From the IMG/VR virus record IMGVR_UViG_3300033182_000674, positions 155,677-219,676 of that record: a stretch of DNA of 64,000 bases; one strand, given 5' to 3'. This document shows positions 40,774 to 64,000 of the stretch, piece by piece (positions within the stretch are counted from its first letter, which is position 1; every line of letters starts with the position of its first letter). The translations under genes and the position numbers were made by a program. The notes beneath the pieces are model-generated. The model ran no database searches. It was not told the DNA's origin and was given only the letters and a program-made list of their open reading frames with translations.

Positions 40774-42203
40774 TACGCATTGCCTCCATCAATAACTGGA
40801 TTAGTTACGCTGCCCCATGTAGCATAATTAGAACCTGTACTACATTCAGTTAATTCGACAACAATCTTAATATCTTCTGTTTGGTTGATTACTCTTTCAA
40901 CAGCAGTTCTATTATGCAAATAAAGAATATCACCAGACCAAGGATCAACTTCAGGCTTAACTCTTGGATCAGCAATCGTTGCATTACCAATGCCACCTTG
41001 TTCTGTAATAGTTTCACCAGCTTGGAAAGCAACATAACCAGTGCTATCATTTTGGTGATACCATAATTCTGTTCCAGTGTTATTAATATCATCAACAATA
41101 CCTACAGCACCAGATGTTGAACCTTCAAAATATCTATCTTTTGTAAATGAAATTGGACATGCAGACAATGTCATTGAATATAAAGACTTACCAGTTACAT
41201 CAGTAAATGGATTGCCTTGTGCAGAATCCATTGGATCTTTTAGAATTGCAATTTGTCTAAAGTCTTGTAAAGTAATAAAGTCATCATCATCACCAGCAAT
41301 TTTAACATTAAACATTACTGAATTACATAATAGATCTGACGGTGCATCTTTACCAAAACCTTTATTAGAACTAATTACTGGTCTAACAACTGCACCAACA
41401 CCATTTGAATCAACTAATGTTAGAAGTGCACCATCAACTCCTGAGATATAATCTAATGTAGATGAATCATTTTTATATTCAACTTTAGCAATACCACCTG
41501 TAGAAGAATCAACAAAAATGTCTACCTTATTAGTTACTTGCTCATTAATATTTAATTTAACATTTGAAGAGTAACCGCTACCGCTATCATCAACAATAAA
41601 TGAAGTAATCATTTTAGGTCTAGCTGCGGTTTGAACTTCATATTGTTTTAGAGCAATACCATTAGAATTAGAATCTACAAAACCAATTGTTTGAGTAGGC
41701 ATATAATTCTTAGACATAAACAATGATGCTTTTAATGTAGATACGGTGTACAAGAATTTCCATACATAACCATCTGATAATTCAAATGGATCATTATTTG
41801 CAGCAGTTGGTTGAACAGTAGAAGGAACTGGAACACCTTGATCATTTCTACCAGTTCTTAAACAAACATAAACACCATAGTCATTATTTAAAACAAAGAA
41901 AGGTGAACTATATTCACTTAATCTTAGCTTATCGTCATATTGAGAATATACAGTTCCTTTTTTCCAGTCAAATCTTTCTACTACTAAAGATGCAGCACTA
42001 ATTTTAATAATGCCTTGCATACCTTTTCTGAAATCATTTTCATTAATGTAGTTATTGATAGGCATATCAGGTGAATCTAAATTATTTGCCCAAGCCTCAG
42101 ACTTACCTACTGCGACATAATAGTTTGAAGTAGGATTACCAATTTCTCTAACTAAGAAACTTAATAATTCCTTTTTAAATCTGTCTGTAACGATTGCTGA
42201 CAT
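40773..42203 (-). CDS. gp8: Baseplate wedge subunit gp8
   Basis: NYYVAVGKSEAW, RFDWKKGTVYSQYDD, YGVYVCL, DGYVWKFLYTV, SGDILYLHNRTAVER...EDIKIVVE; position after gp6/gp7. Confidence 0.9.
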   Translation of the reverse strand: MSAIVTDRFKKELLSFLVREIGNPTSNYYVAVGKSEAWANNLDSPDMPINNYINENDFRKGMQGIIKISAASLVVERFDWKKGTVYSQYDDKLRLSEYSSPFFVLNNDYGVYVCLRTGRNDQGVPVPSTVQPTAANNDPFELSDGYVWKFLYTVSTLKASLFMSKNYMPTQTIGFVDSNSNGIALKQYEVQTAARPKMITSFIVDDSGSGYSSNVKLNINEQVTNKVDIFVDSSTGGIAKVEYKNDSSTLDYISGVDGALLTLVDSNGVGAVVRPVISSNKGFGKDAPSDLLCNSVMFNVKIAGDDDDFITLQDFRQIAILKDPMDSAQGNPFTDVTGKSLYSMTLSACPISFTKDRYFEGSTSGAVGIVDDINNTGTELWYHQNDSTGYVAFQAGETITEQGGIGNATIADPRVKPEVDPWSGDILYLHNRTAVERVINQTEDIKIVVELTECSTGSNYATWGSVTNPVIDGGNA

Positions 42204-46753: not shown

Positions 46754-48787
46754 TTATTCAGGTATTACTTCCACTAGATCGTTAGGACTTTGAATTTTAC
46801 CATTAAACATTGTTTGAATTTGCATATCAAAGTTGCCAGCATAATCTTCACCGATTTCTGGTCCAACTACTACAATTTGACCATTCATCTTCTTATCAGG
46901 ATCAAACTCATCATAGAATAAAATAATCTTTTGATATGATGCATTGTCCTTTAAGTATACAGCTAATTCATATAGTTTCTCAAAGTCTTGCTCACCTGTT
47001 GCATCATATAATTCATATGCAACAACACGACCTTTCATCGCAAGATCTTTTAATCCACCACTTTCAATATTTTCTGCATCATTATCTTTCTTATATAAAC
47101 CTTCCGCAACAACTAAATTATATCGATCAAACTTTTTAGTTCCATTAAATAATTTAAGTATACTTACTTGCGTAATAAGATTACGTGCTATTGATTTTCT
47201 TTCATCTTGATTAGTAATATGATCTAATGTAAATGAATCACCATATGAAGATACAAATTTAGAAAGAGGAATACCAGGTCCTAAACTTGTTTGTAATGTA
47301 ATCTTATCCATATGATTAGGATTATAATACGGATCAGGTAAGATATTTCTTACTCTTGCTTTTGCTGCCATTTGAGGTGGTTTATACTTCTTAAGACCAA
47401 CAACAGTTTTACCACCAACACCTAATCCAGTATTACCCATTGTTACTGTTGATGATGCACCTCTAATCTTACCAACTTTACTTGGTGTTGGATTAGTATA
47501 ACCTGCATTTAAAACACCATCTTTAATTAATTGAGAAGTGTATTTACTATTACTCAAATGATTATTATCTTTTAGTCTAGATCTAGCTTCTCTTGTATTA
47601 TGTGGTCTAGATGTAACATTATCTGTATTGACCTTTAAATCAATTGCATTTAATAAGCCATCATTTTCATCTACTCTTACCTCACGAATACCACCTTGTG
47701 ATTCATGTAAATATGATTGTAAAATAGATTTAGTAGGTTTAGATGTTTTCTTACCATCAGGTGAATGACCCTGTGATGGATGAGATCTACCACCGCCACC
47801 TAGTCCACCAGCAACTGCTGACCAACCAGCAGTGTTTGCATCACCATTTAAGCTACCATGAAACTCAATTGTTTTCATACTCTTAGCCGCAGTTACTGTT
47901 TCACAATTAACTTCATGTCCAACATAAGTATTATAAGAATACATGATAATGTTTTCACCGCCAATAGTTCCAGTATTACCAAACACTGATAAACTTTGTG
48001 CTGCAATATTCATATCTTCAGATGATATTTGTATTTTAGTTTCAGATGTTATATTAGTATCATGTGAATGTAAATAGTTTGCTTCGCCATTTACATGGTG
48101 TCTAAATGTATTTTTTACAAATGAATTGAATCCATCTAAATAAGTATGAGATACCATTTTAAGTACAGTTGATGATTTAGTCTTTTGTATAATTTCACTT
48201 AATACACCAACAATTCTTTTTCTATATGATCCCATTACATTCACAAGCCAGTTACCACCAACTCGCATTTTCATATCACCTTTAACATCAAGATCATAAT
48301 CACCATTAACAGTCATCTTTAAATTACCATAATAAGTAACACAACCATCGCCTTCAACAGATAACTTATGATCTCCATTAACAACATCAACTCTATTATT
48401 TAATGCATTAACAACAATTGTTCCATCAGGTTTAATTTCGATACCTGCACCATTATTATGCATAATTAAAATACGATCACCACCAGGTGTATCATTCATT
48501 TCAAATACATGGCCGCTTGGTGTTTCATCTATTTGTACATATGGATATTTAGAAATTGTATGTGGTTTAACACCAAGATCGCAGCCTGGTGTACCATTTG
48601 TAATATTTAAATTCTTTACTTCTAAACCACGAGCAGCTTTACTTAATGATGATTCACCACCATAATTTGTCTTTGGATATTTTAATTCAGGATCATTAAA
48701 ACCTTCTTTAGGCCGACCTGTATTAGAAGCAGTTGCTTTACCAACTTTATTTTCTCTAGCTATTAAATCATTATCTGTAATTGACAT
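46754..48787 (-). CDS. gp5 C-terminal part (beta-helix needle) with additional C-terminal domain (677 aa)
   Basis: KYPYVQIDETPSGHVFEMNDTPGGDRILIMHNNG...IEIKPDG, followed by 8-residue VxGD-type repeats. Confidence 0.8.
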   Translation of the reverse strand: MSITDNDLIARENKVGKATASNTGRPKEGFNDPELKYPKTNYGGESSLSKAARGLEVKNLNITNGTPGCDLGVKPHTISKYPYVQIDETPSGHVFEMNDTPGGDRILIMHNNGAGIEIKPDGTIVVNALNNRVDVVNGDHKLSVEGDGCVTYYGNLKMTVNGDYDLDVKGDMKMRVGGNWLVNVMGSYRKRIVGVLSEIIQKTKSSTVLKMVSHTYLDGFNSFVKNTFRHHVNGEANYLHSHDTNITSETKIQISSEDMNIAAQSLSVFGNTGTIGGENIIMYSYNTYVGHEVNCETVTAAKSMKTIEFHGSLNGDANTAGWSAVAGGLGGGGRSHPSQGHSPDGKKTSKPTKSILQSYLHESQGGIREVRVDENDGLLNAIDLKVNTDNVTSRPHNTREARSRLKDNNHLSNSKYTSQLIKDGVLNAGYTNPTPSKVGKIRGASSTVTMGNTGLGVGGKTVVGLKKYKPPQMAAKARVRNILPDPYYNPNHMDKITLQTSLGPGIPLSKFVSSYGDSFTLDHITNQDERKSIARNLITQVSILKLFNGTKKFDRYNLVVAEGLYKKDNDAENIESGGLKDLAMKGRVVAYELYDATGEQDFEKLYELAVYLKDNASYQKIILFYDEFDPDKKMNGQIVVVGPEIGEDYAGNFDMQIQTMFNGKIQSPNDLVEVIPE

Positions 48788-48791
48788 TAGA

Positions 48792-50399
48792 TTAATCCTC
48801 TCGTGGTGGTAATGCCACTAATTCACTTGGTGATAAAGAAGAACTATTTGGAAGAATTGTTAAGTTTCTTTTTCCAAATTTTCTTTCAACAAAATCGGAT
48901 ACATCAAATCCTGGATCAAAGAAATTAGTATCAATATCATTATGACCCCATGCTTGACCACCCGGCCAAACAATATAAAATGCATTCATAAACCGAGATA
49001 GTGTTTGCCATTGCTCAGCTGTAATTGAATCTTCATTGCGATGTTTTTCTGGATTTTCTGTTCCAGATGGACATGCATAACCTGCAATTAAACAAACCGC
49101 AATACTATAGTTATTATGTCCATCAGCATGTCTACCTACTTCATTTACTGGACGACCTTTTTGTAAGTCACCATTTCTTTTAATCACATAATGATAGCCA
49201 ATGCCATCTTCACTCCAGTCGTGTATTTCTTCAGAACCAACATCACCTTGATCACTATATGTATCCGACCAATGTACTACAACTTCAGTTACTTCTCTAT
49301 TAACATATTTTAAATCAGCAAGTAATTCTTCAAATGTATCAATGAAATAAAATTGGAATGTTCCTGCTTCTTCTGCTTGTACATTTTCTAATGTTGGATC
49401 AAAATAAGATGGGGGTGCTGGTCTAACTGGTGTCTTTGCTTTATACCAATTATTTTCATCAACATTCATCTCAAATGCAGGAACAGCAGTTGTACCTAGA
49501 TCAACACCTGCTGTTTCTTGTACGTTATTAACAATGTTATTTAATGATGGATCAATACCAAAGATTGCAGCTTCAACATCTTCTCTATCTAATTCAGTTT
49601 GTCCTGTAATTGGATCAGGTTCAAAATAACCATCTTCATCTAATTTTTCAACAGCATATTCTAATGCTTCTTTATTTTTACCTTGTAGAATAAGAGTTGT
49701 TACTCTTCCTCTTTCAATTGGATTTAATCTATTACGTGTAATTTGGTTAATCTCACCAGTTAATACATCATTTGTATTTAAAGCAGCGATGTTCATTACA
49801 CCACCACCTTCTGGTTTACCTGCATCCGCAATCTTTAATACTGAACTAACAGCTTCTTCAAAGAATGCAATTTGTGATCCAACCTTATTTGAAAATGTTT
49901 TTGAGTTTTGTAAAAATGTATTTAATCCACCTGCATACTTAGATGATGTGATTGCACCTAATACACCAGGTGGTACATTTAAACCAGTTGCACTTTGAAT
50001 AGCACCTTGAATAGCAGATGGAGAAGTACCTGATGTAATCTCCTTTAAGAATCCAGTTGCCTTACCAGTATATTCAGTAATAGCAGAGATATCGGTATTT
50101 GCTTGAGGTTCTTTTTCAAATTCAGATTCCATTCCTGGAATAGTATTAATCCTTGCAACACCTGTACCATCAATGGTATCATCAGGATCAAGCCAATCTG
50201 TTTCAGATGATACTGCTTGAATTCCATTAATAACCATACCAACATTAGAGCTTGCACCTAATTGTGTAACAGATGCTGCTTTCGCTTCAAATGCAAGATC
50301 GCCAATTTTATGAGTAAATGGAGTTAAACCAGAAATACGCTGAACTTGAGATAGTGTTGAATTAAATTGTGAAAATGAAAGTACATTAGTAAGACTCAT
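48792..50399 (-). CDS. Virion-associated protein with C-terminal N-acetylmuramoyl-L-alanine amidase (Amidase_2, T7 lysozyme/AmpD-like) (535 aa)
   Basis: VVVHWSDT, GIGYHYVIKRNGDLQKGRP, GRHADGHNNYSIAVCLIAG, WGHND...DPG (His/His/Asp Zn ligands). Confidence 0.85.
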   Translation of the reverse strand: MSLTNVLSFSQFNSTLSQVQRISGLTPFTHKIGDLAFEAKAASVTQLGASSNVGMVINGIQAVSSETDWLDPDDTIDGTGVARINTIPGMESEFEKEPQANTDISAITEYTGKATGFLKEITSGTSPSAIQGAIQSATGLNVPPGVLGAITSSKYAGGLNTFLQNSKTFSNKVGSQIAFFEEAVSSVLKIADAGKPEGGGVMNIAALNTNDVLTGEINQITRNRLNPIERGRVTTLILQGKNKEALEYAVEKLDEDGYFEPDPITGQTELDREDVEAAIFGIDPSLNNIVNNVQETAGVDLGTTAVPAFEMNVDENNWYKAKTPVRPAPPSYFDPTLENVQAEEAGTFQFYFIDTFEELLADLKYVNREVTEVVVHWSDTYSDQGDVGSEEIHDWSEDGIGYHYVIKRNGDLQKGRPVNEVGRHADGHNNYSIAVCLIAGYACPSGTENPEKHRNEDSITAEQWQTLSRFMNAFYIVWPGGQAWGHNDIDTNFFDPGFDVSDFVERKFGKRNLTILPNSSSLSPSELVALPPRED

Positions 50400-51241
50400 T
50401 TCATATACCTCTCAACTACATCTCTTGCAAATGAATAACGACCTTCATAGTTACTCGGACTTCTTAAATATTTTTCTTGCACTGCTCTTACTGCTTCTTT
50501 TAAGTTTTTAGAACCAAGCAATGCGCCATTAGCATGAGTATAACTTGTACCAAACTCATGAATAATAAATTTTAATTGACCTTCTAATTCAATAGGTAAA
50601 TTATTATCTGCACAATATGCAATCATATTCTTTAAACGTGAACCAGACCAATTAGCAAGTCCACCCCCACCAACTTTTAAATTTGATTCAGCTGATAAGT
50701 TACCAACCATTGCTGCTGCTTGGTCATAGTTATAACCATTTGCTAAAAAGAAATTAAATACCTTTTCACCTGTTGATTCACCTGCAATTTCAGGATTACC
50801 TGGTGTAGTCTTTGGTACAGCAGCATTTGTTGAATACTTATTTTGAACTGGTTTTGCAATAGTATTTAATAAACGATTATTAAATGAAGAAGAATATGCT
50901 TCTTCTTTTGCATCTTTTTCTAAACGTGGAATAGTACCAAGCACTAATGGTATTTGAGAACTAGTTCCATCCATGAATATACCAAATACTTGCGCACCAT
51001 TTTCAATCTTAGGTGTTTTACCAAGACCAGATACACCACCTTCAGTTCCAGGCACTGTTACTTGTGCCCAAGGTAAATCGCTATTAGGTATATCTAAAAC
51101 ATCACTAGAGTGAATACCGTGTATTCTGACCTGGACTCTGCCAAGCCTTAATGGATCTTTATTATTTGTAGCAATACCCACAAACCAACGAGTATTATCG
51201 CCATAATATTCACTATTAAATACTTTAAGATTCATACTCAT
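50396..51241 (-). CDS. gp5: gp5 N-terminal OB-fold fused to a phage-tail-lysozyme domain (281 aa)
   Basis: WFVGIATNNKDPLRLGRVQVRIHGIH...LPWAQV...VFGIFMDG...PLVLGTIP; then AAAMVGNLSAES...GLANWSGSR...QLKFIIHE. Confidence 0.85.
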   Translation of the reverse strand: MSMNLKVFNSEYYGDNTRWFVGIATNNKDPLRLGRVQVRIHGIHSSDVLDIPNSDLPWAQVTVPGTEGGVSGLGKTPKIENGAQVFGIFMDGTSSQIPLVLGTIPRLEKDAKEEAYSSSFNNRLLNTIAKPVQNKYSTNAAVPKTTPGNPEIAGESTGEKVFNFFLANGYNYDQAAAMVGNLSAESNLKVGGGGLANWSGSRLKNMIAYCADNNLPIELEGQLKFIIHEFGTSYTHANGALLGSKNLKEAVRAVQEKYLRSPSNYEGRYSFARDVVERYMK

Positions 51242-53320: not shown

Positions 53321-54253
53321 TTAAAAGGTGTTACTATTAAGACCGTCATTATTCCAATCCCATTGCTTAATAATATCTTCATATGTTAGAGCGCGTGCTT
53401 CGATGAAGGTAAGTGCCATATTAATTTCTTGGAAATGACCACCCTTATAGAATGATTGTTGTTGTGGGTTATAGTTTGTTTGTACTACACGTAAATACAT
53501 TCTTTCAAATCTAATATCATTGCTTAATGGTTTTCCATCATACAATGCAGTTATTTGAAATTGATTAGGAAACTTATATGCAATAGGAATACCAGTATTT
53601 GCCATTTTAATTGTTTTAGGATAAAGATTCTTTCTAAAGTAATGAATAATTCTTTTTACTTGTTCTGCTTCTGCTTCACTCTTTGGCAGCATTTTAAAAT
53701 CAAAAGAAAATTCTCTTAAGTTAACAGATTTAAATAATGCTCTAGTATTTGGATTGGGTACAGTCTTTAATGCGGATTGAACAGCACCAGCTGTTGCTCC
53801 ACCCATACCACCCGCAAATCTTGAACCAACCGCTCGTGCTGCATCTTGACTAATCTCACCTTTAAACATATCAGCCAATGAACCAACACCAGCAGCAGCG
53901 GTAGCTTTTGCGGCAGCTCCTAATGATGCACCATTATTTAATGCATTTTCTCCAACCGCACCCAGAAAACCAAGATCAACGTTATCTAATTGAACACCAT
54001 CTGCAATTTGTAATGATGGCGGTAAGTATAATAATACTGAATCAGATTGTTTAATGCTTCGCGCATTTTGTAATTCAGCACTAGCCACTTGGTCATATGT
54101 CGGTAAACTATTCCCTGTTGCGCCATCAGTTGAATTGCTTGCTTCGCCTTTAGATGTATCAAAGCTCGGTGGAACTTGCTCGTATGTCTCAAATTTGAGC
54201 CAAGCTTTGTTTCTTTGCTGATCATCTAATGGAAATGTATATCGTCCGGCCAT
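53321..54253 (-). CDS. gp48: Baseplate tail-tube cap gp48
   Basis: LLYLPPSL, NPNTRALFKSVNLREFSFDFKMLPKSEAEAEQVKRIIHYFR, PNQFQI, VQTNYNP, INMALTFIE. Confidence 0.85.
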   Translation of the reverse strand: MAGRYTFPLDDQQRNKAWLKFETYEQVPPSFDTSKGEASNSTDGATGNSLPTYDQVASAELQNARSIKQSDSVLLYLPPSLQIADGVQLDNVDLGFLGAVGENALNNGASLGAAAKATAAAGVGSLADMFKGEISQDAARAVGSRFAGGMGGATAGAVQSALKTVPNPNTRALFKSVNLREFSFDFKMLPKSEAEAEQVKRIIHYFRKNLYPKTIKMANTGIPIAYKFPNQFQITALYDGKPLSNDIRFERMYLRVVQTNYNPQQQSFYKGGHFQEINMALTFIEARALTYEDIIKQWDWNNDGLNSNTF

Positions 54254-54316: not shown

Positions 54317-54814
54317 ATGACATACCAAGGGAAATACAAAGTTAAAAATCCAGAAAAGTATCGAGGCGACTACAATGATGTTATTTACAGATCAATGTGG
54401 GAAAGGAATTCATTTAGATGGTGTGATGAAAATCCAAACGTAAAGTATTGGAGTTCTGAAGAAGTTGTCATACCATATTTTTATGATGTAGATAAAAAGT
54501 ATCATCGATATTTTGTTGACCTTAAAATAACATTCACAGATGGTACAACATTTTTAATTGAAATAAAACCAGCAGTCCAAACTGAACCACCAAAATATCA
54601 TGGGAAAAAGACTAAACGTTATATCACAGAAGGTATGACATATGTAAAGAACATGAATAAGTGGGAAGCTGCTGAAAAGTATTGCAAACAACGTGGTTGG
54701 AAATTTCAAATATGGACTGAAAAAGAATTAAGTAAAATGGGTTTATTACCTAAGAAATTAAAACCTATGGCACCAATGAGAAAAAAGAAAAAGAAGACTG
54801 TAAAGAAAAAGTAA
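54317..54814 (+). CDS. gp4: Head completion protein gp4 (TnsA-like nuclease fold)
   Basis: YQGKYKVKNPEKYRGD...IYRSMWE...WSSEEVVIPY...HRYFVD...LIEIKP...NMNKWEAAEKYC...WKFQIWTE. Confidence 0.95.
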   Translation: MTYQGKYKVKNPEKYRGDYNDVIYRSMWERNSFRWCDENPNVKYWSSEEVVIPYFYDVDKKYHRYFVDLKITFTDGTTFLIEIKPAVQTEPPKYHGKKTKRYITEGMTYVKNMNKWEAAEKYCKQRGWKFQIWTEKELSKMGLLPKKLKPMAPMRKKKKKTVKKK

Positions 54815-54836: not shown

Positions 54837-55421
54837 ATGAGTAATTTATTTCAAAATTTAGAACAACAAGCATTTAGAGCTGGCATCACGCCTAGGTCTA
54901 ATGAATCAATGGACTGGTTTCGTAAGAAAGCCCAGAAGATTCGTCGCATCAATAGAAAAGAATTGATGAATGAAGATCCACTTGAATTAAGAACTAATAT
55001 GAGACCTGGTAATATGTTTATGTTCTTCTACGATCCTAAACATAAAGAAACTCTACCATATTATGATACGTTCCCTTTGGTTATTATGGTTGATAAAGCG
55101 CCAAAAGGTTTTTATGGATTAAATTTACATTACTTAAATCCAATTCTAAGAGCTAAATTTTTAGACTCATTAATGGATATAACAACTAATGCATCATATG
55201 ATGATTCAACTCGTTTTAAAGTATCGTATGCATTATTAAAGAAAGCCGCAAAGTTTAAGTATTTTAAACCTTGCTTTAAACATTATTTGACTGAACATGT
55301 TAAAAGTCGATTTGCTTATGTGCCAGCACCAGAATGGGAGATTGCTACATTCCTTCCAACAGCTGACTTTAAGAAAGCAAATCCAAATACTGTTTATAGT
55401 CAATCTAGAGGAATGATTTGA
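54837..55421 (+). CDS. gp2: DNA end protector protein gp2
   Basis: PGNMFMFFYDPKHKETLPYYDTFPLV...GFYGLNLHYL...PCFKHYL. Confidence 0.95.
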   Translation: MSNLFQNLEQQAFRAGITPRSNESMDWFRKKAQKIRRINRKELMNEDPLELRTNMRPGNMFMFFYDPKHKETLPYYDTFPLVIMVDKAPKGFYGLNLHYLNPILRAKFLDSLMDITTNASYDDSTRFKVSYALLKKAAKFKYFKPCFKHYLTEHVKSRFAYVPAPEWEIATFLPTADFKKANPNTVYSQSRGMI

Positions 55422-56023
55422 TGCCGAACATAGATCAATTAAAATCAACATTAACAGCTGAAAGTGGATTAGCAAGAACTAATCTATATTCAGTTATACT
55501 ACCATTCATTAATGGTGTTGATATTCGTTCTGATTCATTAAACATCCTCGCAAAGAATATTACACTACCTGGTCGTCAAATTAGTACAAGTGAAAGACAA
55601 ACTGGTACTAAGTTTGAAAAAATGGCATATAACCATTTGGTTGATGATGTAGGTATGACATTTTATGTTACAAATACTTTTAATCTTAAAAGATATTTTG
55701 AAGCTTGGCAAAATCTTACATTTGATCAAGAAACATTTGAATTAAATTTTAAGAAACCAAGTTTTACTACTGGTGCTGATGGTTATGGTAAAACAATTGA
55801 AATTAGACAGTTGTCTAAGTCGTCACCAAACCTTCCACCAACAACAGGTCCTTTTGACCTAATCAAATCATATAATGTAGATGAATCAAAAGATGTTATC
55901 TACACTGTATATCTAGAAGAGGCTTTTCCTACTTCTGTAAATGCTATCGAGTTGGGAAATGAACTTGATGGTTTAGTTGAATTGAATGTGCAATTTTCGT
56001 ATACAAACTGGAGATCTAAATAA
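55418..56023 (+). CDS. Tail tube initiator / tube-like protein (gp54-like)
   Basis: GLARTNLYSV, NITLPGRQI, MTFYV, YFEAWQN, LEEAFPTSVNAIEL...LNVQFSYTNW: gp19/gp54 fold pattern. Confidence 0.75.
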   Translation: MMPNIDQLKSTLTAESGLARTNLYSVILPFINGVDIRSDSLNILAKNITLPGRQISTSERQTGTKFEKMAYNHLVDDVGMTFYVTNTFNLKRYFEAWQNLTFDQETFELNFKKPSFTTGADGYGKTIEIRQLSKSSPNLPPTTGPFDLIKSYNVDESKDVIYTVYLEEAFPTSVNAIELGNELDGLVELNVQFSYTNWRSK

Positions 56024-56733
56024 TGGCTTTACCAATTTTAAATGATAAACCCAAATATGTTATGACACTTCCTTCCACTGGAAAGGAAATAAAATATAGA
56101 CCATATTTGGTCAGAGAAGAAAAGATTTTAATGGTTGCATTAGAATCACAAGACAAAGCAGCGGCAATGAATGCAATTGTTGATACCATTGCTGCTTGTA
56201 TCTATGACGATATCAATAAGAATGCATTAACCGTATTCGATATTGAATATATGTTTTTAAAGATTAGATCTAAATCTGTTGGTGAAAAGATTCAGATCGG
56301 TCTAAGATGTACTAACTGTGAAGAAGTTAATGAAGTAGAAGTAGATATTGAAAAACTACCTTTACCTAAAGTTGAAAGTAAAGAAGTTTTTGTTGATATT
56401 ACAGATGATATCGTACTTAAAATGAAATATCCTAACTTTAAAGATATGGCCGAATTAGAAAAGAATACTAATTTGTCTGATACAGATAAAACATTTAAAC
56501 TCATTATTAGTTGTATGGATTCTATCCAAACCGGTGATGAGAATATTCTTATTAAAGATGAAAAAGAAGCTGATGTGATGAACTTTATTGAATCATTAAA
56601 CACTGCACAATTTAATAAGATTAAAGATTATGTTGAAGCAATGCCAAGAGTTGAATATGATATTGACTTTAAGTGTACAGGTTGTGGTACAGAAAATCAT
56701 GGTGAATTAAGAGGCGTTGAAGATTTTTTTTAA
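56023..56733 (+). CDS. gp26: Baseplate hub assembly protein gp26
   Basis: MALPIL...PKYVMTLPSTGKEIKYRPYLVREEKILMVA, DIEYMFLKIRSKSVGE, C-terminal CTGC...LRGVEDFF. Confidence 0.93.
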   Translation: MALPILNDKPKYVMTLPSTGKEIKYRPYLVREEKILMVALESQDKAAAMNAIVDTIAACIYDDINKNALTVFDIEYMFLKIRSKSVGEKIQIGLRCTNCEEVNEVEVDIEKLPLPKVESKEVFVDITDDIVLKMKYPNFKDMAELEKNTNLSDTDKTFKLIISCMDSIQTGDENILIKDEKEADVMNFIESLNTAQFNKIKDYVEAMPRVEYDIDFKCTGCGTENHGELRGVEDFF

Positions 56734-56912
56734 TAGCTCTTTCCCATGATAATCTAGTTAATTATTATAAGACTAATTTTCAAATGATGCAACATCATCA
56801 TTATAGTCTAACAGAACTTGAAAATATGATGCCGTGGGAAAGAGAGATTTACATTACTCTTCTTATCGCACACATCGAAGAAGAGAATGAACGACTTAAA
56901 AAGCAACAGTAA
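56733..56912 (+). CDS. gp51: Baseplate hub assembly catalyst gp51 (short form; start uncertain, first ATG at 56784)
   Basis: Not in the ORF track. Reads IALSHDNLVNYYKTNFQMMQHHHYSLTELENMMPWEREIYITLLIAHIEEENERLKKQQ, the typical short gp51 signature; frame open from 56721. Confidence 0.85.
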   Translation: MALSHDNLVNYYKTNFQMMQHHHYSLTELENMMPWEREIYITLLIAHIEEENERLKKQQ

Positions 56913-56951: not shown

Positions 56952-59453
56952 ATGACAAGATCAAGAGACATATCTGCATTACTTGGTAGTACAGGTACGA
57001 TTACAGCAAGTGTTTTAGATGCATCGGTTTCTGAAGCATTAGGTGGTGGTACTGATACGTATGATTCTGTAGCAACGTTACCATTAACAGGTAATGATGC
57101 AGGTGATCAAGCATTTGTATCTGAAAATAATCGTTTATATCTTTGGAACGGTTCTGGTTGGTATAATATCGCTTTGATTAATACCGCACCGAGCATCACT
57201 GGTGGTGGCGCTGGTTCATACGAACTAGCTATTGATGGTACACCAACAGTTATTACATTAACTGCTACAGATCCAGAAGGTTTACCTATTACTTGGTCTT
57301 ATAGTGTTACTTCAGGCTCTCTAGGTTCAACAGCTACTGTATCTCAAGTAGATAATGTATTTACTATTACTCCAAGTACTAGTACATCTGATCAAGGAGA
57401 ATTTACTATAACATTTACTGCTTCAGATGGTGTAAATATTGCTACTGATGTGAATAGCTTCTCATTAAACTTTCTATCTGCACTATGGAGTGAGGTAGCA
57501 TTAAGTATTGGAACATCATCTACAAATAGTTTAAATAATTCTACATTTGTTGATCGATCTACTAATGCACATACAGTAACACCATCTGGATCTCCAGTAC
57601 AGACCGCATTCAATCCATATTTAGATACATGGTCAACTTATTTTGATGGATCCACTCGAGCTTATCTTAATAATAATCCTTTTCAAATTACAACCGGCGA
57701 ATTCACAATTGAAGCTTGGATCAAAGCACCTATCAATCGATCAGAAACTAAGATGATTATTGAGAATACTAATTGGAATACAGGCGATAATGGTGGATGG
57801 AGAGCACAGGTAAATGCTGATGGTACGATTGGTATTAATGCATCAGTAGGTGTTTGGAATGACTTCCCAGCTATTACTGCATCAACTCAAACTATTAATG
57901 AAGGAGAATGGAATCACATCGCATTTGTTAGGAATGCATCTAATGAAGTTTCAATCTATATTAATGGAGTTCAAGATACAGCTTCGATTGTGACTCATGC
58001 AACATCTTTAAATTTATTTGGAGATAATGATGGAACACTAGAAACACTTTACTCACGAATTGGTTATCATGGGGCCGATGGTGGTGTATACAACGTATTT
58101 TCTGGATATATGTCTACAATTAGAGTCTCGACTGTTTGCCGATATACTTCAACGTTTGATCCTTTAAGTGCAGATTACAGCGCAGATGCTAATACAAAAT
58201 GCTTATTATTACACACAAGCGATGCATCTTTTACAGAAGGAACCTCTTCTGAAGTACCAGTGTGGACAGGAACTCCCGTTACTAGAGGAGGATATGATTT
58301 ATCTGAGTATACTTCATCAACAAATTATGGTTCTGTATATTTAGACAACAATTCATATATAACAGTTCCGACTAATATTACTATATCTAATACTGCTACA
58401 ATTAGTTGTTGGGTGAATCCAAATCAAATTTCATCATCAGAAGATCCAATATTTAAATTTTATGATGGATCTTCTCCCGTAGAATTTCGTCAGACTTCAA
58501 ACGATTTAAATGTTGCAGTTGGTAGCAACTGGACACATACTGTTCAAGATGTATTTAGAGTTGGAGAATGGGTACACATTGCTGTAACTAAAAATGGTAC
58601 CAATAGTAATTTATTTGTAAATGGCATATTAGTATCTTCATCTACAAGTGCAACAAATGGAATAATTAGTTTTGCTGGCCCAAATAGAATTGGAGCTAAT
58701 CAAACTAATTCTTACTATTTTCATGGAACAATATCCGATTTTAAAATAAGTACAACTGAAGATTATACTACAAACTTTACTCCACCAACAGCACCAGTTG
58801 GAAACACAAACGCAGAACTGTATCTTCCAATGGATAATGCAGGAATTTTCGATAAGACTGGAAATAATACTCTAACACTTGGTGGTAACGCAGCTACTTC
58901 TACAACTCAGACTAAGTTTGCTGATACTTCTATGTATTTTGATGGTACTGGGGATTATATCTCAGTAAATGATTTTCCACCAATTGGATCGGGTGACTAC
59001 ACAATGGAGTTTTGGATGAACGGATCATCTGTAGATGCATCAGGAACATGGCAATCTTTATTAAGTAGGGATTACGCAAACACAGATGGGTTTAGACTTT
59101 ATAAAAAAGATGCTGCAGCTGAACTAGTATTCTATAATGGTAGTACTGCAACTGCAACTACTGTAAGTGCAGGATTAACTAATAATACATGGCATCATAT
59201 CGCAGTAGTTAGAAATAGTGGCACTTTAGACATATACGTTGATGGTGTTTCAAAGGTATCAGTATCAAACTCTACTAATATTTCTGAAGCAGTTCAACCA
59301 ATAAACATTGGTGGTAATACTGGAGAAGCATCGAGCTATCCATTTACAGGATACTTAGAAAATGTACAAATACTTATAGGTGTCGCTAAATACACTACAA
59401 ACTTTACATCTCCTACTAGAACTCAAGGTAGAACTTTCCAGGCGGAATCATAA
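56952..59453 (+). CDS. Virion appendage protein: shared N-terminal/Ig-like module plus LamG/concanavalin A-like domains (833 aa)
   Basis: FTIEAWIK...WNHIAFVR, ATISCWV...WVHIAVTK, YTMEFW...WHHIAVVRNSGTLDIYVDG: three LamG-like repeats. Confidence 0.8.
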   Translation: MTRSRDISALLGSTGTITASVLDASVSEALGGGTDTYDSVATLPLTGNDAGDQAFVSENNRLYLWNGSGWYNIALINTAPSITGGGAGSYELAIDGTPTVITLTATDPEGLPITWSYSVTSGSLGSTATVSQVDNVFTITPSTSTSDQGEFTITFTASDGVNIATDVNSFSLNFLSALWSEVALSIGTSSTNSLNNSTFVDRSTNAHTVTPSGSPVQTAFNPYLDTWSTYFDGSTRAYLNNNPFQITTGEFTIEAWIKAPINRSETKMIIENTNWNTGDNGGWRAQVNADGTIGINASVGVWNDFPAITASTQTINEGEWNHIAFVRNASNEVSIYINGVQDTASIVTHATSLNLFGDNDGTLETLYSRIGYHGADGGVYNVFSGYMSTIRVSTVCRYTSTFDPLSADYSADANTKCLLLHTSDASFTEGTSSEVPVWTGTPVTRGGYDLSEYTSSTNYGSVYLDNNSYITVPTNITISNTATISCWVNPNQISSSEDPIFKFYDGSSPVEFRQTSNDLNVAVGSNWTHTVQDVFRVGEWVHIAVTKNGTNSNLFVNGILVSSSTSATNGIISFAGPNRIGANQTNSYYFHGTISDFKISTTEDYTTNFTPPTAPVGNTNAELYLPMDNAGIFDKTGNNTLTLGGNAATSTTQTKFADTSMYFDGTGDYISVNDFPPIGSGDYTMEFWMNGSSVDASGTWQSLLSRDYANTDGFRLYKKDAAAELVFYNGSTATATTVSAGLTNNTWHHIAVVRNSGTLDIYVDGVSKVSVSNSTNISEAVQPINIGGNTGEASSYPFTGYLENVQILIGVAKYTTNFTSPTRTQGRTFQAES

Positions 59454-59468
59454 GAAGGATAATCGATA

Positions 59469-60938
59469 ATGGCATCTAAATCACTATACTTATCGTCTCT
59501 AATCGGTGCTGATAATAAAGTAGCAGCTGAATCTCTTTCAGCAGATATTCCATTAGGTACTGAAGATTATTCAACCGCCAATGATTTACCTGCAACTGGT
59601 AATCAAGTAGGTGATCAAGCATTTGTTGCGTCAACACAAAGATTGTATATCTGGACTGGCGCAGGCTGGTATAATATTGCTTTAATCAATCAAACACCAA
59701 CGTGGGATTCAGGTGGTCAGCCAGAAGTAGAATACGAATTAGATTCTATCGGCGGTACTGCTACTTCAATCATACTATCAGCTACTGACCCTGATGGTCT
59801 ACCAATTGAATGGACTTATTCGATTACAGATTCAGGTAATGATCTTGCGACTATTACGAACGATTCAAATGGTACATTTACGATTACTGCAAAATCATTA
59901 GATGACATATTAAATGCAGGTTATGATTCAGAAGGCGGAGTATTTGATATTACCTTTAGAGCAAGTGATGGGGTAAACCTTGCAACTGCTTTATCAACAT
60001 TTACTCTTTCATTTAGTGCTGCACTTTCTTTCCAGGGAACAAGCTATGGATATATTTCAGGCGCATCTAATGGTGCTACTATTGAAAAATTCTCTATAGC
60101 TTCTGATGGTAATTCAACTACTATTGGAAATATGACACTTGATACTTATAAAAGAGTTGGTGCAACTGCTGTTGATGCTGGTTTTTCTGCTGGTGATAGA
60201 AGTAGTCCTGCAACAGCAACAATTGATAGATTCCCATTTGCATCAGATACTAACGCAACAAACGTAGGTTCAACAACGACGACAAGAGAACGTTTAGGCT
60301 TTGCTAATACATCAGTATTAACACAATATGGATATTTGTCTGGTGGTTATTATGGACCAGTTTGGCCTCAAATAGTAAACACAATTGAAAAATACGCTTT
60401 TGCTAATACAATTACTTCATCAAACGTTGGTAATTTAGCTGAAAGTACAAGGTATAGTGAAACACAATGTTCCCTTGATAATGGATATTCATCTGGCGGG
60501 TGGGGTACACCAGGCAATAACCAATATATCAGTTTAATTCAAAAGTTTCCATTTTCCGCAGATACCAATGCATCAAGCATTGGTAATTTAAGTAATAATA
60601 GAGATCCGGCTGCAGGTGCATCTTCTCTTACAGATGGGTATGCAATGGCTGGAACCAGTGGTGGACCAGCTGGTAGTAATTATTTAGATATTCAAAAATT
60701 CCCATTTGCCACAAGTGTCACCAGATCGACCGTTGGTAGTTTATATAATCAATCTAGAGATGGTGCAGGAATAAGCGGTGATACATATGGATATTTAGCT
60801 GGAGGTTATGCGCCTGAAGCGCCATATACTGGTTATTACCCATTGATAGTCAAATTTTTATACGCGTCTGAGGGAACTAAAGCTCAGGTCGGATCAATAG
60901 CTGCTGATAGTCTAGATCATGCTGGTCACCAAATTTAA
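59469..60938 (+). CDS. Virion appendage protein: shared N-terminal module plus Kelch-like propeller repeats (489 aa)
   Basis: About six repeats of GYxxGG...IEKFPFASDTNAxxVGxL. Confidence 0.75.
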   Translation: MASKSLYLSSLIGADNKVAAESLSADIPLGTEDYSTANDLPATGNQVGDQAFVASTQRLYIWTGAGWYNIALINQTPTWDSGGQPEVEYELDSIGGTATSIILSATDPDGLPIEWTYSITDSGNDLATITNDSNGTFTITAKSLDDILNAGYDSEGGVFDITFRASDGVNLATALSTFTLSFSAALSFQGTSYGYISGASNGATIEKFSIASDGNSTTIGNMTLDTYKRVGATAVDAGFSAGDRSSPATATIDRFPFASDTNATNVGSTTTTRERLGFANTSVLTQYGYLSGGYYGPVWPQIVNTIEKYAFANTITSSNVGNLAESTRYSETQCSLDNGYSSGGWGTPGNNQYISLIQKFPFSADTNASSIGNLSNNRDPAAGASSLTDGYAMAGTSGGPAGSNYLDIQKFPFATSVTRSTVGSLYNQSRDGAGISGDTYGYLAGGYAPEAPYTGYYPLIVKFLYASEGTKAQVGSIAADSLDHAGHQI

Positions 60939-62295: not shown

Positions 62296-64000
62296 ATGGC
62301 AACTATACAAGATGTTGTAAACGAATTAGAAAACAACAGAACAGATCAAGAGAAATATTCTTATATTGCTTCAGAAGAAAGAAGTAATATTGTTTCTGCT
62401 GTTCAAGAGTTAAATAAAACATTTACATCATCTATTAATGGATTAACCGATGGGTTAAAAAACATTACTGTTAAAACTGGTTTCAAATTTAAGATTCCTG
62501 GATTAGAAGCACTAAAGTCTGGTATTACTGATAATGTTATTGTTAAATCAATTAAGAGTGCAATCAGTGGTGTCAAAGATGCTTTCTTAGCGCCATTCGC
62601 ATTAGTAAAAGAGACTATGACACTTGTTAAAGATTCTTTTATGACTGCATTAAAAGGTTTTGGCAGTATTATCTTATCACCATTCAAAGCAATCAAAAAC
62701 TTCTTTGGTAATAAAGATGAAAGAGAAGAACTTGGTGTATTAAAATCTATTGATAAAAATACTGGTGCTCTTAATAAAAACTTTGAGCGCTGGATTGAAA
62801 TAATGGCTAGCCAAGAGTTAGATAAAGCTGAACAAGAAAGAGAAGCAGGAAAAAGAAAAGATAAAGACGGAAAAGAGCAAAAACCTGGAATGTTTGATAA
62901 GCTACTTGGCAATAAAGGCAAGAGTATGCTTAAAGGACTACCAGAATTCGGTGCAGGTTTAGTCTTAGTATCTGGTGCTTTATGGGTTGCATCAAAAGCA
63001 TTTGCATCATTTGGTGATGTTGGTTGGGGTGATGTTGGTAAAGGTTTACTTGTTCTTGGTGGTTTCGTTGCTTTAGGTAAATCATTAGAATTAATGAAAG
63101 GCTCTCTCATAAAAGCAGCTTTAGGTTTTGGTGTATTTGCAGCTGCCACTTGGGGAGTAAGTAAAGCACTTGGTGAATTCGGTAATGTTGATTGGAGTAC
63201 GATTGCGAAAGCAGTGGTTGTTCTAGGTGGAATAACACTAGCCGCTACAGCAATGAGTGCTGCCGCAGTTCCAATGGCTATTGGTGCTGCTGGTTTAACC
63301 GCTATTGGTGGTGCTGTTTGGGTCATCGGAAAGGGCTTCCAGGAGCTCGGAGATTCATTCAATATGTTCATTGATAGTGTAGTAAGGCTATCAGAAGTTG
63401 GGTTCGCTGGCCTAGCTGGAGTGGCCGGTGGACTAGGTTTATTGGCCCCTGCTTTAGTAGCATTTGGTGCTGGTGCTGGATTATCTGGATTTATGAGTCT
63501 ATTTGGTGGTGGAAGTCAATTAGATAATCTTGCTAAATTAGCAGAACACGGTGATGGTATTGGTAAAGCGGCAAGTGGTTTAAAGAAACTCGCAGAAGCA
63601 TTAAAAGAATTGGCTAAGGTGCCAAGTAATGCAATGGATGCTATTAATGATTTCCCTTGGTTAAGAGCAACTGCATTTGTTGCAGCTGGTGGATCAATGG
63701 AAGTAAGTGGTGCTAAAGTATATGCTAAAAGTAATGATGCACCACCAAGTGTAGAAAAAACAGTTACGAAAGCAGAAGCGGTTAAACAAATTGCAGCTAA
63801 GACACCAAGTGGTTCAACTGAATGGACACCAATGTCTCATAAAGATCCCAATTATAAAGGACCACAAAAAGCTACTGTTTTAGGTAAAGGTGCTTTAACA
63901 AAAGAACAAATTCGTGAAGGTATTAAAGACGGATCTATAAAAAGATCACTTGGTAATAAAGCGCTTAAAGTAATTGATATGAAAGAAAAAGCGCATAAGG
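62296..64000 (+). CDS. Partial tape-measure-like / gp29-like protein, runs off the right edge
   Basis: ATG at 62296 (MATIQDVVNELENN...) with no stop seen to the window end; Ala/Gly-rich amphipathic helical repeats with periodic Trp (GDVGWGDVGKG, GNVDWSTIAKA); not in the ORF track. Confidence 0.7.
   Translation, partial: MATIQDVVNELENNRTDQEKYSYIASEERSNIVSAVQELNKTFTSSINGLTDGLKNITVKTGFKFKIPGLEALKSGITDNVIVKSIKSAISGVKDAFLAPFALVKETMTLVKDSFMTALKGFGSIILSPFKAIKNFFGNKDEREELGVLKSIDKNTGALNKNFERWIEIMASQELDKAEQEREAGKRKDKDGKEQKPGMFDKLLGNKGKSMLKGLPEFGAGLVLVSGALWVASKAFASFGDVGWGDVGKGLLVLGGFVALGKSLELMKGSLIKAALGFGVFAAATWGVSKALGEFGNVDWSTIAKAVVVLGGITLAATAMSAAAVPMAIGAAGLTAIGGAVWVIGKGFQELGDSFNMFIDSVVRLSEVGFAGLAGVAGGLGLLAPALVAFGAGAGLSGFMSLFGGGSQLDNLAKLAEHGDGIGKAASGLKKLAEALKELAKVPSNAMDAINDFPWLRATAFVAAGGSMEVSGAKVYAKSNDAPPSVEKTVTKAEAVKQIAAKTPSGSTEWTPMSHKDPNYKGPQKATVLGKGALTKEQIREGIKDGSIKRSLGNKALKVIDMKEKAHK

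Follow-up and report, generated by a model that had tools for sequence, protein, structure and literature searches.

In long-tailed phages, a conserved -1 frameshift in the tail assembly chaperone genes is reported to yield two proteins with a shared N-terminus, the short G and the C-terminally extended GT of lambda (Xu, Hendrix and Duda 2004, Mol Cell). The slip occurs at a heptamer near the end of the upstream ORF, the -1 ORF has no start codon of its own, and the genes lie between those for the tail tube and the tape measure protein. G/GT-type chaperones bind the tape measure protein, recruit tube protein and are absent from the virion, as T4 gp51 is (PMC3004832). In T4, the baseplate hub assembly chaperones gp26 and gp51 come from two divergently transcribed paralogous genes, as also in Aeromonas phage phiAS4. 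In cyanophages and marine vibriophages, by contrast, a "short gp51" of only about a fifth of the length of T4 gp51 was treated as a small separate gene (Sullivan et al. 2010, PMC3037559; the KVP40 record note), with no frameshift mentioned in either text. A further -1 site, in E. coli dnaX, generates gamma and tau from a homopolymeric heptamer with a downstream stem after a 6-nt spacer.

A possible site of this kind was examined in a marine T4-like phage (IMG/VR record IMGVR_UViG_3300033182_000674), in a window of 64,000 nucleotides covering positions 155,677 to 219,676 of that record. The gene 26 homologue (56023-56733, plus strand, as are all parts of the site described below; 236 aa) ends in the codons GGC, GTT, GAA, GAT, TTT, TTT and TAA, with a run of eight T at 56724-56731, the slippery heptamer T_TTT_TTT at 56724-56730 in gp26 phase, and the stop at 56731-56733 directly after it. 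The -1 frame has TGA at 56718-56720 and then stays open from 56721 to the stop at 56910-56912; an ATA lies at 56733-56735 inside TAATA, whereas the gp54-like/gp26 junction has TAATG (56021-56025), and the first in-frame ATG is at 56784-56786, 17 codons after the ATA. Every coordinate given in the initial annotation was thus confirmed, and its observation is correct. The identity of gp26 is solid (PF12322, E 3.3e-60, 203.9 bits against a curated cut-off of 24.5; phrog_150, E 1.8e-58), and it is the only PF12322 gene in the 219,676-bp genome. The T8 run is more than chance, since TTTTTTTT or AAAAAAAA occurs once in the window against 16.1 +/- 6.2 in dinucleotide-preserving shuffles. Furthermore, of 39 Phe-Phe dipeptides in 33 other genes of the window none has the T_TTT_TTY configuration, and all 15 that follow a T-ending codon use TTC as the first Phe codon. 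The only other in-phase T_TTT_TTA in the window's genes (40252-40258, minus strand) was dismissed because its -1 frame closes after 4 codons.

Conservation of the terminal codons, the T-run and the -1 frame among T4-like gp26-gp51 pairs had been named in advance as the check on a frameshift, and the comparison favored it. In-phase T_TTT_TTN is present in all 103 related loci examined and in all 85 clusters formed at 80% identity, and is invariant in an alignment (A3), although the T-run has 6 T in 35 clusters, 7 in 16 and 8 in 34. The preceding codon always ends in T (GAT 44, AGT 22, AAT 9, TCT 8, GCT 2), while in the same genes T-ending use is only 70-77% and TTT makes up 75% of Phe codons. 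The second codon may be Leu (TTA or TTG), so the bases are more conserved than the amino acid. The zero-frame stop lies 0 codons (39) or 1 codon (42) after the heptamer in 81 of 85 clusters. The heptamer is kept in the GC-rich phages ACP17 (59% GC at the locus), DLP_6 and pf16, and is lost exactly where it is not needed: in T4, which has a separate 249-aa gene 51, the gp26 Phe-Phe is TTC TTT, and LIMEstone1 has ATT TTC with an ATG for its tail ORF. The two-gene arrangement of Aeromonas phage phiAS4 likewise has no heptamer. Transcriptional slippage, in which RNA polymerase adds one extra U on the T8 run and the same protein results, is an unlikely alternative. Homopolymer runs of this kind are slippage sites in Thermus dnaX, IS elements and endosymbiont genes, and the genome otherwise avoids T8/A8 runs; however, such sites typically have 9 or more A/T, the T6 and T7 of the relatives are too short for efficient slippage by E. 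coli RNA polymerase, and polymerase slippage needs neither the codon phase nor the wobble T of the preceding codon. No RNA runs were found, so transcript editing and expression were not examined. An assembly indel that split a single gene is conceivable, since homopolymers are error-prone in some sequencing chemistries and a T9 would give one continuous ORF, and an untranslated relic might be imagined as well. Both are effectively refuted, because contigs from three independent metagenomic studies span the T8 run without indels, the split arrangement recurs in 103 of 103 loci, and the tail is under strong purifying selection. In-frame gp26-gp51 fusions were sought among close relatives, but the 120 best homologues are all 230-241 aa, showing that the split arrangement is stable.

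The -1 frame extension (56730-56912, 60 codons plus stop) encodes the conserved gp51 C-terminal module. It matches phrog_634 (E 7e-28) and aligns with T4 gp51 residues 200-244 by BLASTP (E 2e-5) and with T4 gp51 by hhalign (E 6e-5). T4 gp51 itself is a PF12322 domain (residues 1-201, E 4e-52) followed by this tail in one ordinary ORF; on phrog_150, gp26 covers positions 5-232 and the -1 peptide 236-276, so that the junction is collinear and gapless. Both parts of a gp51-type long form are therefore present but in two frames, and whether the locus belongs to that type is left undecided here, since membership holds only if the slip occurs. The tail is more conserved than the gp26 body (63% against 45% mean column identity), with coding periodicity in the -1 frame (codon-position conservation 0.78/0.88/0.58), and its model is helical (pLDDT 87). 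Translation of only the 42-aa ORF from the ATG at 56784 is very unlikely, although many database records start gp51 at the equivalent internal Met, among them C48C1, Mosig, Melnitz, S-RSM4 and pf16. The 17 codons before the ATG, which include the Leu-Ser-His..Tyr-Tyr-Lys segment (56742-56771), are among the best conserved (the L-S-H..L.N.Y..N-F motif is nearly invariant), show coding periodicity and align with T4 gp51 residues 200-220. In C48C1 the first Met is only 34 codons from the end, and in ACP17, avDM12, Syn30, S-WAM1 and Sf-CH1b no gp51 ORF is annotated downstream of gp26 at all.

The initial annotation also offered an ATA start, which fits poorly. On such a reading the tail would be a separate protein of roughly 59 aa made by termination-reinitiation or leaderless-like non-AUG initiation, and no fusion would be made. 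At the ATA position, the second codon after the slip and here read as Ile, relatives have ATA 32, GTA 20, CTA 12, ATT 9, GTG 5 and others; Ile (ATA/ATT) is the commonest (41 of 85), but the codon is GTA, CTA, TTA or GTC, two changes away from AUG, in 35 of 85 clusters (about 41%), and only 7 of 85 have ATG, GTG or TTG. No Shine-Dalgarno-like sequence lies in front, the upstream bases being the U run. It had been stipulated that homologues with a canonical ATG at this place and no conserved T-run would speak against the frameshift, and the outcome was more nuanced: KVP40, phiM19, DLP_6 and RSP15 have an ATG near that position but keep the heptamer, whereas the one lineage that lost the heptamer, LIMEstone1, has an ATG. 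In KVP40, ValKK3, RSP15, LIMEstone1 and DLP_6 the ATG is one or two codons away, with TAATG or TGATG overlaps. The tail may thus be able to work as a separate small protein in these lineages and phiM19, and a free-standing tail seems viable in LIMEstone1. Independent initiation does not explain the invariant phased heptamer, its retention in GC-rich genomes or its loss only where a full gp51 or an ATG exists, and is considered unlikely.

A 12-bp long-range stem with one G-U pair begins 6 nt after the heptamer, in which 56737-56748 (Leu-Ser-His codons) pairs with 56833-56844 (Pro-Trp-Glu-Arg codons) across an 84-nt loop. It is the closing helix in both the MFE and centroid folds of 56724-56860 (-29.3 kcal/mol, z -3.28). 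Two of its base pairs covary specifically: alignment columns 21 and 120 (CG 31, UA 26, Fisher p 4.6e-8) and columns 18 and 123 (CG 36, UA 22, p 2.8e-9). Neither associates with any of 14 other A/G-polymorphic columns, so a GC3 or codon-bias effect was rejected. Tree-independent pairs go the same way (5.7 against 0.1, median p 0.03; 3.8 against 0.1, median p 0.125), though the second test is underpowered. RNAalifold predicted no consensus structure on the same 84-sequence junction alignment; the stem was found by eye and then tested as a named structure, so that a slide control is biased, and about a quarter of cells at the two covarying pairs do not pair. The duplex is strong in the window, Mosig, Melnitz, C48C1 and KVP40 but not evident in S-WAM1, Syn30, S-RSM4, Sf-CH1b, pf16, ACP17 or avDM12, several cyanophages among them, hence it is not universal. 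Such a covarying stem 6 nt downstream is nevertheless the geometry of a ribosomal stimulator, which also argues against polymerase slippage.

Based on these findings, a model is proposed with good confidence that gene 26 carries a programmed -1 ribosomal frameshift site at its last two sense codons; the main interpretation of the initial annotation, a slip on U_UUU_UUU giving a gp26-gp51 fusion analogous to lambda G/GT, is supported. In this view, most ribosomes read GAU UUU UUU, stop at UAA and release the 236-aa gp26-type chaperone, while a fraction slip back one base, either with both tRNA-Phe together or with the P-site tRNA while the stop codon waits in the A site, and read UUA AUA GCU and onward to 56912. 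The result would be a 296-aa protein of about 34 kDa with gp26 at its N-terminus and a 60-aa three-helix tail, the counterpart of T4 gp51, so that one gene would supply both hub-assembly chaperones in a fixed ratio. The slip is probably stimulated by the stem and possibly also by the adjacent stop codon. The signal, its conservation, the stem covariation and the collinearity with gp51 are demonstrated by the analysis, whereas the occurrence of the slip, its efficiency, which was not measured for U_UUU_UUU in the unknown host, and the roles of the two products are inferred. There is no direct protein or RNA evidence, as no proteome or ribosome profiling of the fusion was found and only DNA metagenome contigs were recovered. 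The model nonetheless accounts for the shortness of cyanophage and vibriophage gp51, in that gp26 would supply the missing 200 residues.

The signal is conserved across most T4-like phages other than T4 itself. T4-like marine phages are among the most abundant viruses in the ocean, and 977 phage records have a gp26 hit, while 588 hold the tail; in the 19 of those whose annotation was inspected it is truncated, unannotated or called as a small separate gene, and none of 21 records inspected in all carries a joined CDS. Literature searches found no description of this frameshift, although subscription journals were not covered and a prior description cannot be excluded. The site was found in Kyanoviridae, Schizotequatrovirus, Chrysonvirus, one Ackermannviridae member (RSP15), Emdodecavirus, Busanvirus and Chakrabartyvirus. 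It is slightly more likely than not that the slip is the T4-superfamily version of the near-universal tail-assembly-chaperone frameshift and ancestral to the superfamily, and that T4 and its close relatives replaced it by duplicating the gene and hard-wiring the two products as genes 26 and 51. T4 gp26 and gp51 would then be the long-missing G and GT of T4, a pair whose ratio matters by hypothesis, deposited T4-like genomes, to judge from the records inspected, would generally mis-annotate gp51, and the chaperone-frameshift rule would reach the one large group of long-tailed phages thought to lack it.

Compared with lambda G/GT, the locus shares the predicted short and extended products (236 and 296 aa, inferred from sequence and from collinearity with T4 gp51), the heptamer near the end of the upstream ORF and the lack of a conserved start in the -1 ORF. 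The AlphaFold2 model of gp26 (pLDDT 93.8) shows two similar halves, and its top structural matches by VIA-align are 3fgx (Z 8.0) and the tail assembly chaperones YqbN 3klu (Z 7.3) and HK97 2ob9 (Z 7.2), with unrelated proteins at 4.5 or below. These borderline values fit the analogy but lie within the range the method calls common, and the best Foldseek hit in the PDB, 2ob9, reached only E 0.26; a chaperone fold is thereby neither established nor excluded. Sequence searches of the PDB with gp26 and with T4 gp51 found nothing, and a Pfam scan of the two gp26 halves and the tail at E up to 10 gave no tail-assembly-chaperone family. Tape measure binding, tube protein recruitment and absence from virions were not examined, nor was a complex predicted, as no binding is claimed. 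The lambda-like position upstream of the tape measure gene, as suggested initially, is not supported: the upstream neighbor is a tail-tube-like gp54 homologue (phrog_45), but the next gene (56952-59453) is an 833-aa LamG-domain structural protein, no tape measure gene is recognizable next to it, and the only tape-measure-like hit is weak and lies 5.4 kb away at 62296-63999. The locus differs from lambda further in its protein family (PF12322, a tandem duplication with two CxxC hairpins), in the heptamer U_UUU_UUN, in the long-range stem as stimulator, and in that the T4 counterparts act on the baseplate hub rather than the tube as such. In dnaX the shift shortens the product, whereas here it would extend it; both are bacterial-type -1 sites with a homopolymeric heptamer and a stem after 6 nt, and possibly an upstream purine-rich, Shine-Dalgarno-like element, here AGAGG at 56710-56714, 9 nt upstream, which is confounded with conserved (Glu/Lys/Arg)-Gly codons and was not shown to matter. 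The short gp51 of cyanophages and marine vibriophages is the same ORF as the tail here. In conclusion, short and long forms of the PF12322 protein exist in T4 as two genes without the heptamer, whereas in the window one gene plus a frameshift would give both.

The DNA comes from a marine T4-like myovirus whose 219,676-bp record was judged complete and ends with the 64-kb window; by gp26, the nearest named relative is Phage C48C1 (Kyanoviridae), at 43% identity. The site lies in a baseplate and tail module containing a gp48-like tube cap (53321-54253, minus strand), a gp4-like head closure protein (54317-54814), a gp2-like DNA end protector (54837-55421), a gp54-like tube protein (55418-56023) and gp26 (56023-56733), with large LamG-domain structural proteins further downstream. 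Two of these downstream proteins (56952-59453 and 59469-60938) share a similar N-terminal region of about 90 aa (..GDQAFV....RLY.W.G.GWYNIALIN..), and the first also has three LamG/concanavalin-like domains; they may be baseplate-attached fibres or receptor-binding proteins. A partial 568-aa ORF running off the end of the window (62296-63999) has a weak match to part of a tape-measure PHROG (E 7e-11) and might be the gp29 counterpart, 5.4 kb downstream of gp26. On the minus strand (46754-51241), gp5-like hub/lysozyme similarity is split over two ORFs (46754-48787 and 50396-51241) with an amidase-domain ORF (48792-50399) between them, a layout that differs from T4 gene 5.

The initial annotation described gp26 as ending GAT TTT TTT TAA on a run of eight T with an open -1 frame behind it, and this observation proved correct in every detail, no alternative genetic code being used. 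The T8 run occupies 56724-56731, the -1 frame is closed by TGA at 56718-56720 and then open from 56721 to 56912, ATA sits in TAATA at 56733, and the first ATG is at 56784. The gp26 product belongs to PF12322 (E 3e-60), whereas the -1 peptide matches the gp51 family phrog_634 (E 7e-28) as well as positions 236-276 of the gp26/gp51 family phrog_150, on which gp26 itself covers positions 5-232. Read across the slip, the two pieces are therefore collinear and gapless on a profile built from one-ORF proteins. In T4, genes 26 (208 aa) and 51 (249 aa) are divergently transcribed paralogues, both of PF12322, and residues 200-244 of T4 gp51 align with the -1 peptide of the window, starting at the Phe-Phe (BLASTP E 2e-5; hhalign with 60 tails E 6e-5). 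Since the genome of the window has only one PF12322 gene, a gp51-type long form can arise only by joining the two frames.

Conservation of the T run and of the -1 frame among homologues had been proposed beforehand as the check on a frameshift, and was examined on 103 junctions from 4 named phages, 19 plus 80 IMG/VR loci at 26-54% gp26 identity, and the window, which fall into 85 clusters at 80% identity. Every junction has T_TTT_TT in the gp26 codon phase, with the seventh base being T in 50 clusters, C in 25, A in 8 and G in 2. The preceding codon always ends in T (GAT, AGT, AAT, TCT, GCT), although in the same genes those amino acids use the T-ending codon only 70-77% of the time and Phe is TTT 75% of the time. 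The second codon is sometimes Leu (TTA/TTG), so that the bases, not the peptide, are what is kept. The run length varies, with 6 T in 35 clusters, 7 in 16 and 8 in 34, but the phase never does, and the zero-frame stop follows within 0 or 1 codon in 81 of 85 clusters. Polymerase slippage on the T8 run would give the same protein and may contribute here, but it does not explain the invariant phase or the 6-T sites, and is regarded as unlikely to be the main mechanism. At the position of the ATA, which the initial annotation had offered as an alternative start, relatives have ATA 32, GTA 20, CTA 12, ATT 9 and GTG 5, plus others, and only 7 of 85 have a canonical start. Initiation at ATA or reinitiation is contradicted by the GTA and CTA codons in 41% of relatives and is considered improbable.

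The same heptamer and -1 tail occur well outside this clade, in cyanophages S-WAM1, Syn30 and S-RSM4, vibriophages KVP40 and ValKK3, Sinorhizobium phage phiM19, Stenotrophomonas phage DLP_6, Pseudomonas phage pf16, Ralstonia phage RSP15 (Ackermannviridae), Acidovorax phage ACP17 (59% GC at the locus) and Aeromonas phage avDM12. The negative controls fit: T4 has its own gene 51, and its gp26 codes Phe-Phe as TTC TTT, while Dickeya phage LIMEstone1 (positions 1468-1665 of its locus) has lost the heptamer, which reads ATT TTC, and its 49-aa tail ORF starts with an ATG in a TAATG overlap. KVP40 (positions 1465-1680 of its locus), ValKK3, phiM19, DLP_6 and RSP15 have both a heptamer and a nearby ATG. 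These ATG-bearing lineages show that a free tail protein may be viable, and may be evolutionary intermediates between a frameshift and separate genes. Within the window, runs of 8 T or A are strongly avoided, the slip site being the only one in 64 kb against 16.1 +/- 6.2 expected. Furthermore, none of 39 Phe-Phe dipeptides in the other genes has the slippery form, and whenever the preceding codon ends in T they are coded TTC-first (15 of 15). The only other in-phase T_TTT_TTA heptamer in the long ORFs of the window (40252-40258, minus strand), in the 613-aa ORF 38935-40776, has a -1 frame that closes after 4 codons and is probably meaningless.

A downstream stem was recognized by eye in an alignment of 84 junctions, which align without gaps, from the complementarity of the Leu-Ser-His codons to the Pro-Trp-Glu-Arg codons about 90 nt further on. 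In the window, 56737-56748 pairs with 56833-56844 in 12 bp with one G-U, starting 6 nt after the heptamer, and this is the closing helix of both the MFE and the centroid fold (-29.3 kcal/mol, z -3.28, 0 of 200 shuffles as stable). RNAalifold found no consensus structure, but counting the named helix gave 78.2% paired cells against 74.7% in shuffles (0/500) and a covariation score of 0.162 against 0.108 (0/500), a comparison to be read with the selection by eye in mind. Two wobble positions covary in the helix register: column 21 x 120 has CG 31 and UA 26 (Fisher p 4.6e-8), and column 18 x 123 has CG 36 and UA 22 (p 2.8e-9). Neither column associates with the other's partner or with any of 14 other A/G-polymorphic columns, and base composition therefore does not explain the covariation. 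On a gp26 tree these sites change at least 14-19 times, and phylogenetically independent pairs go the compensatory way (5.7 against 0.1, median p 0.03; and 3.8 against 0.1, median p 0.125, the latter underpowered), whereas cross-controls are flat. The duplex is strong in the window, Mosig, Melnitz, C48C1 and KVP40 but not evident in several cyanophages or in pf16, ACP17 and avDM12, so that it is probably a clade-level stimulator and not a universal one. Polymerase slippage does not explain this stem either.

An assembly error is excluded, in that contigs from three independent metagenome studies (97-98% identical to the window) span the run with no gap, and no difference was seen between 56637 and 56754. 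Many short contigs from other phages in four metagenomes map to 56785-56850 at 88-95% identity; this stretch, covering the tail and the 3' arm of the stem, is among the most conserved DNA at the locus. The tail is not a relic: the 120 best database homologues of gp26 are all 230-241 aa, the tail is better conserved than gp26 (63% against 45% mean column identity), and it shows codon periodicity of 0.78/0.88/0.58 in the -1 frame, starting right after the heptamer. Translation of only the 42-aa ORF from ATG 56784 ignores the best-conserved 17 codons, and is held to be very unlikely.

Of the two readings proposed in the initial annotation, the -1 slip is supported and the ATA start is not. The best explanation is -1 ribosomal frameshifting on U_UUU_UUU, helped by the stem and perhaps by the adjacent stop, which would give a 236-aa and a 296-aa product. 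This is held with good confidence; the heptamer, its conservation and the stem covariation are what the sequences themselves show, whereas the slip and its longer product are inferred from them.

The gp26 model is confident (pLDDT 93.8) and is a tandem duplication (hhalign of the two halves: E 1.8e-6, prob 90%), in which each half is strand-strand, three helices, then a strand hairpin with a CxxC pair, so that two zinc-ribbon-like hairpins are predicted; the annotated internal product gp26' of T4 (C-terminal 95 aa) roughly equals the second repeat. The tail is predicted as a three-helix unit (pLDDT 87). Sequence searches found no solved relative, but the three best structural matches of the gp26 model are 3fgx (Z 8.0), the prophage protein YqbN 3klu (Z 7.3) and the HK97 tail assembly chaperone 2ob9 (Z 7.2, 85 residues), with unrelated proteins at 4.5 or below. 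YqbN belongs to the XkdN-like tail assembly chaperone family, and 2ob9 is also the first hit of Foldseek, though a non-significant one. Z 7-8 is borderline by the note of the alignment tool itself, and the chaperone fold is taken here as a lead only, which leaves the structural relationship undecided. In the T4 literature, gp26 and gp51 are listed as hub assembly chaperones.

None of the 21 records inspected carries a joined or ribosomal-slippage CDS; in public phage records gp51 is annotated from an internal Met (34-47 aa; 57 aa in pf16), as a small ORF, or not at all. Full-text searches, which did not extend to subscription literature, found no description of this frameshift. Sullivan et al. 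2010 (PMC3037559) noted that gp51 of cyanophages and vibriophages lacks "the first ~200 amino acids", and the KVP40 record notes similarity to the C-terminus of T4 gp51, but neither text mentions a frameshift. With respect to the E. coli dnaX frameshift, a purine-rich AGAGG (56710-56714) lies 9 nt upstream of the heptamer and could act like the dnaX Shine-Dalgarno stimulator; similar GAGGG, GAAGG or AAGGG motifs occur in most relatives, but they coincide with conserved (Glu/Lys/Arg)-Gly codons, and the two were not separated. In conclusion, the -1 frameshift of the tail-assembly-chaperone type is already known, and the proposed site joining gp26 to gp51 is placed with that type.
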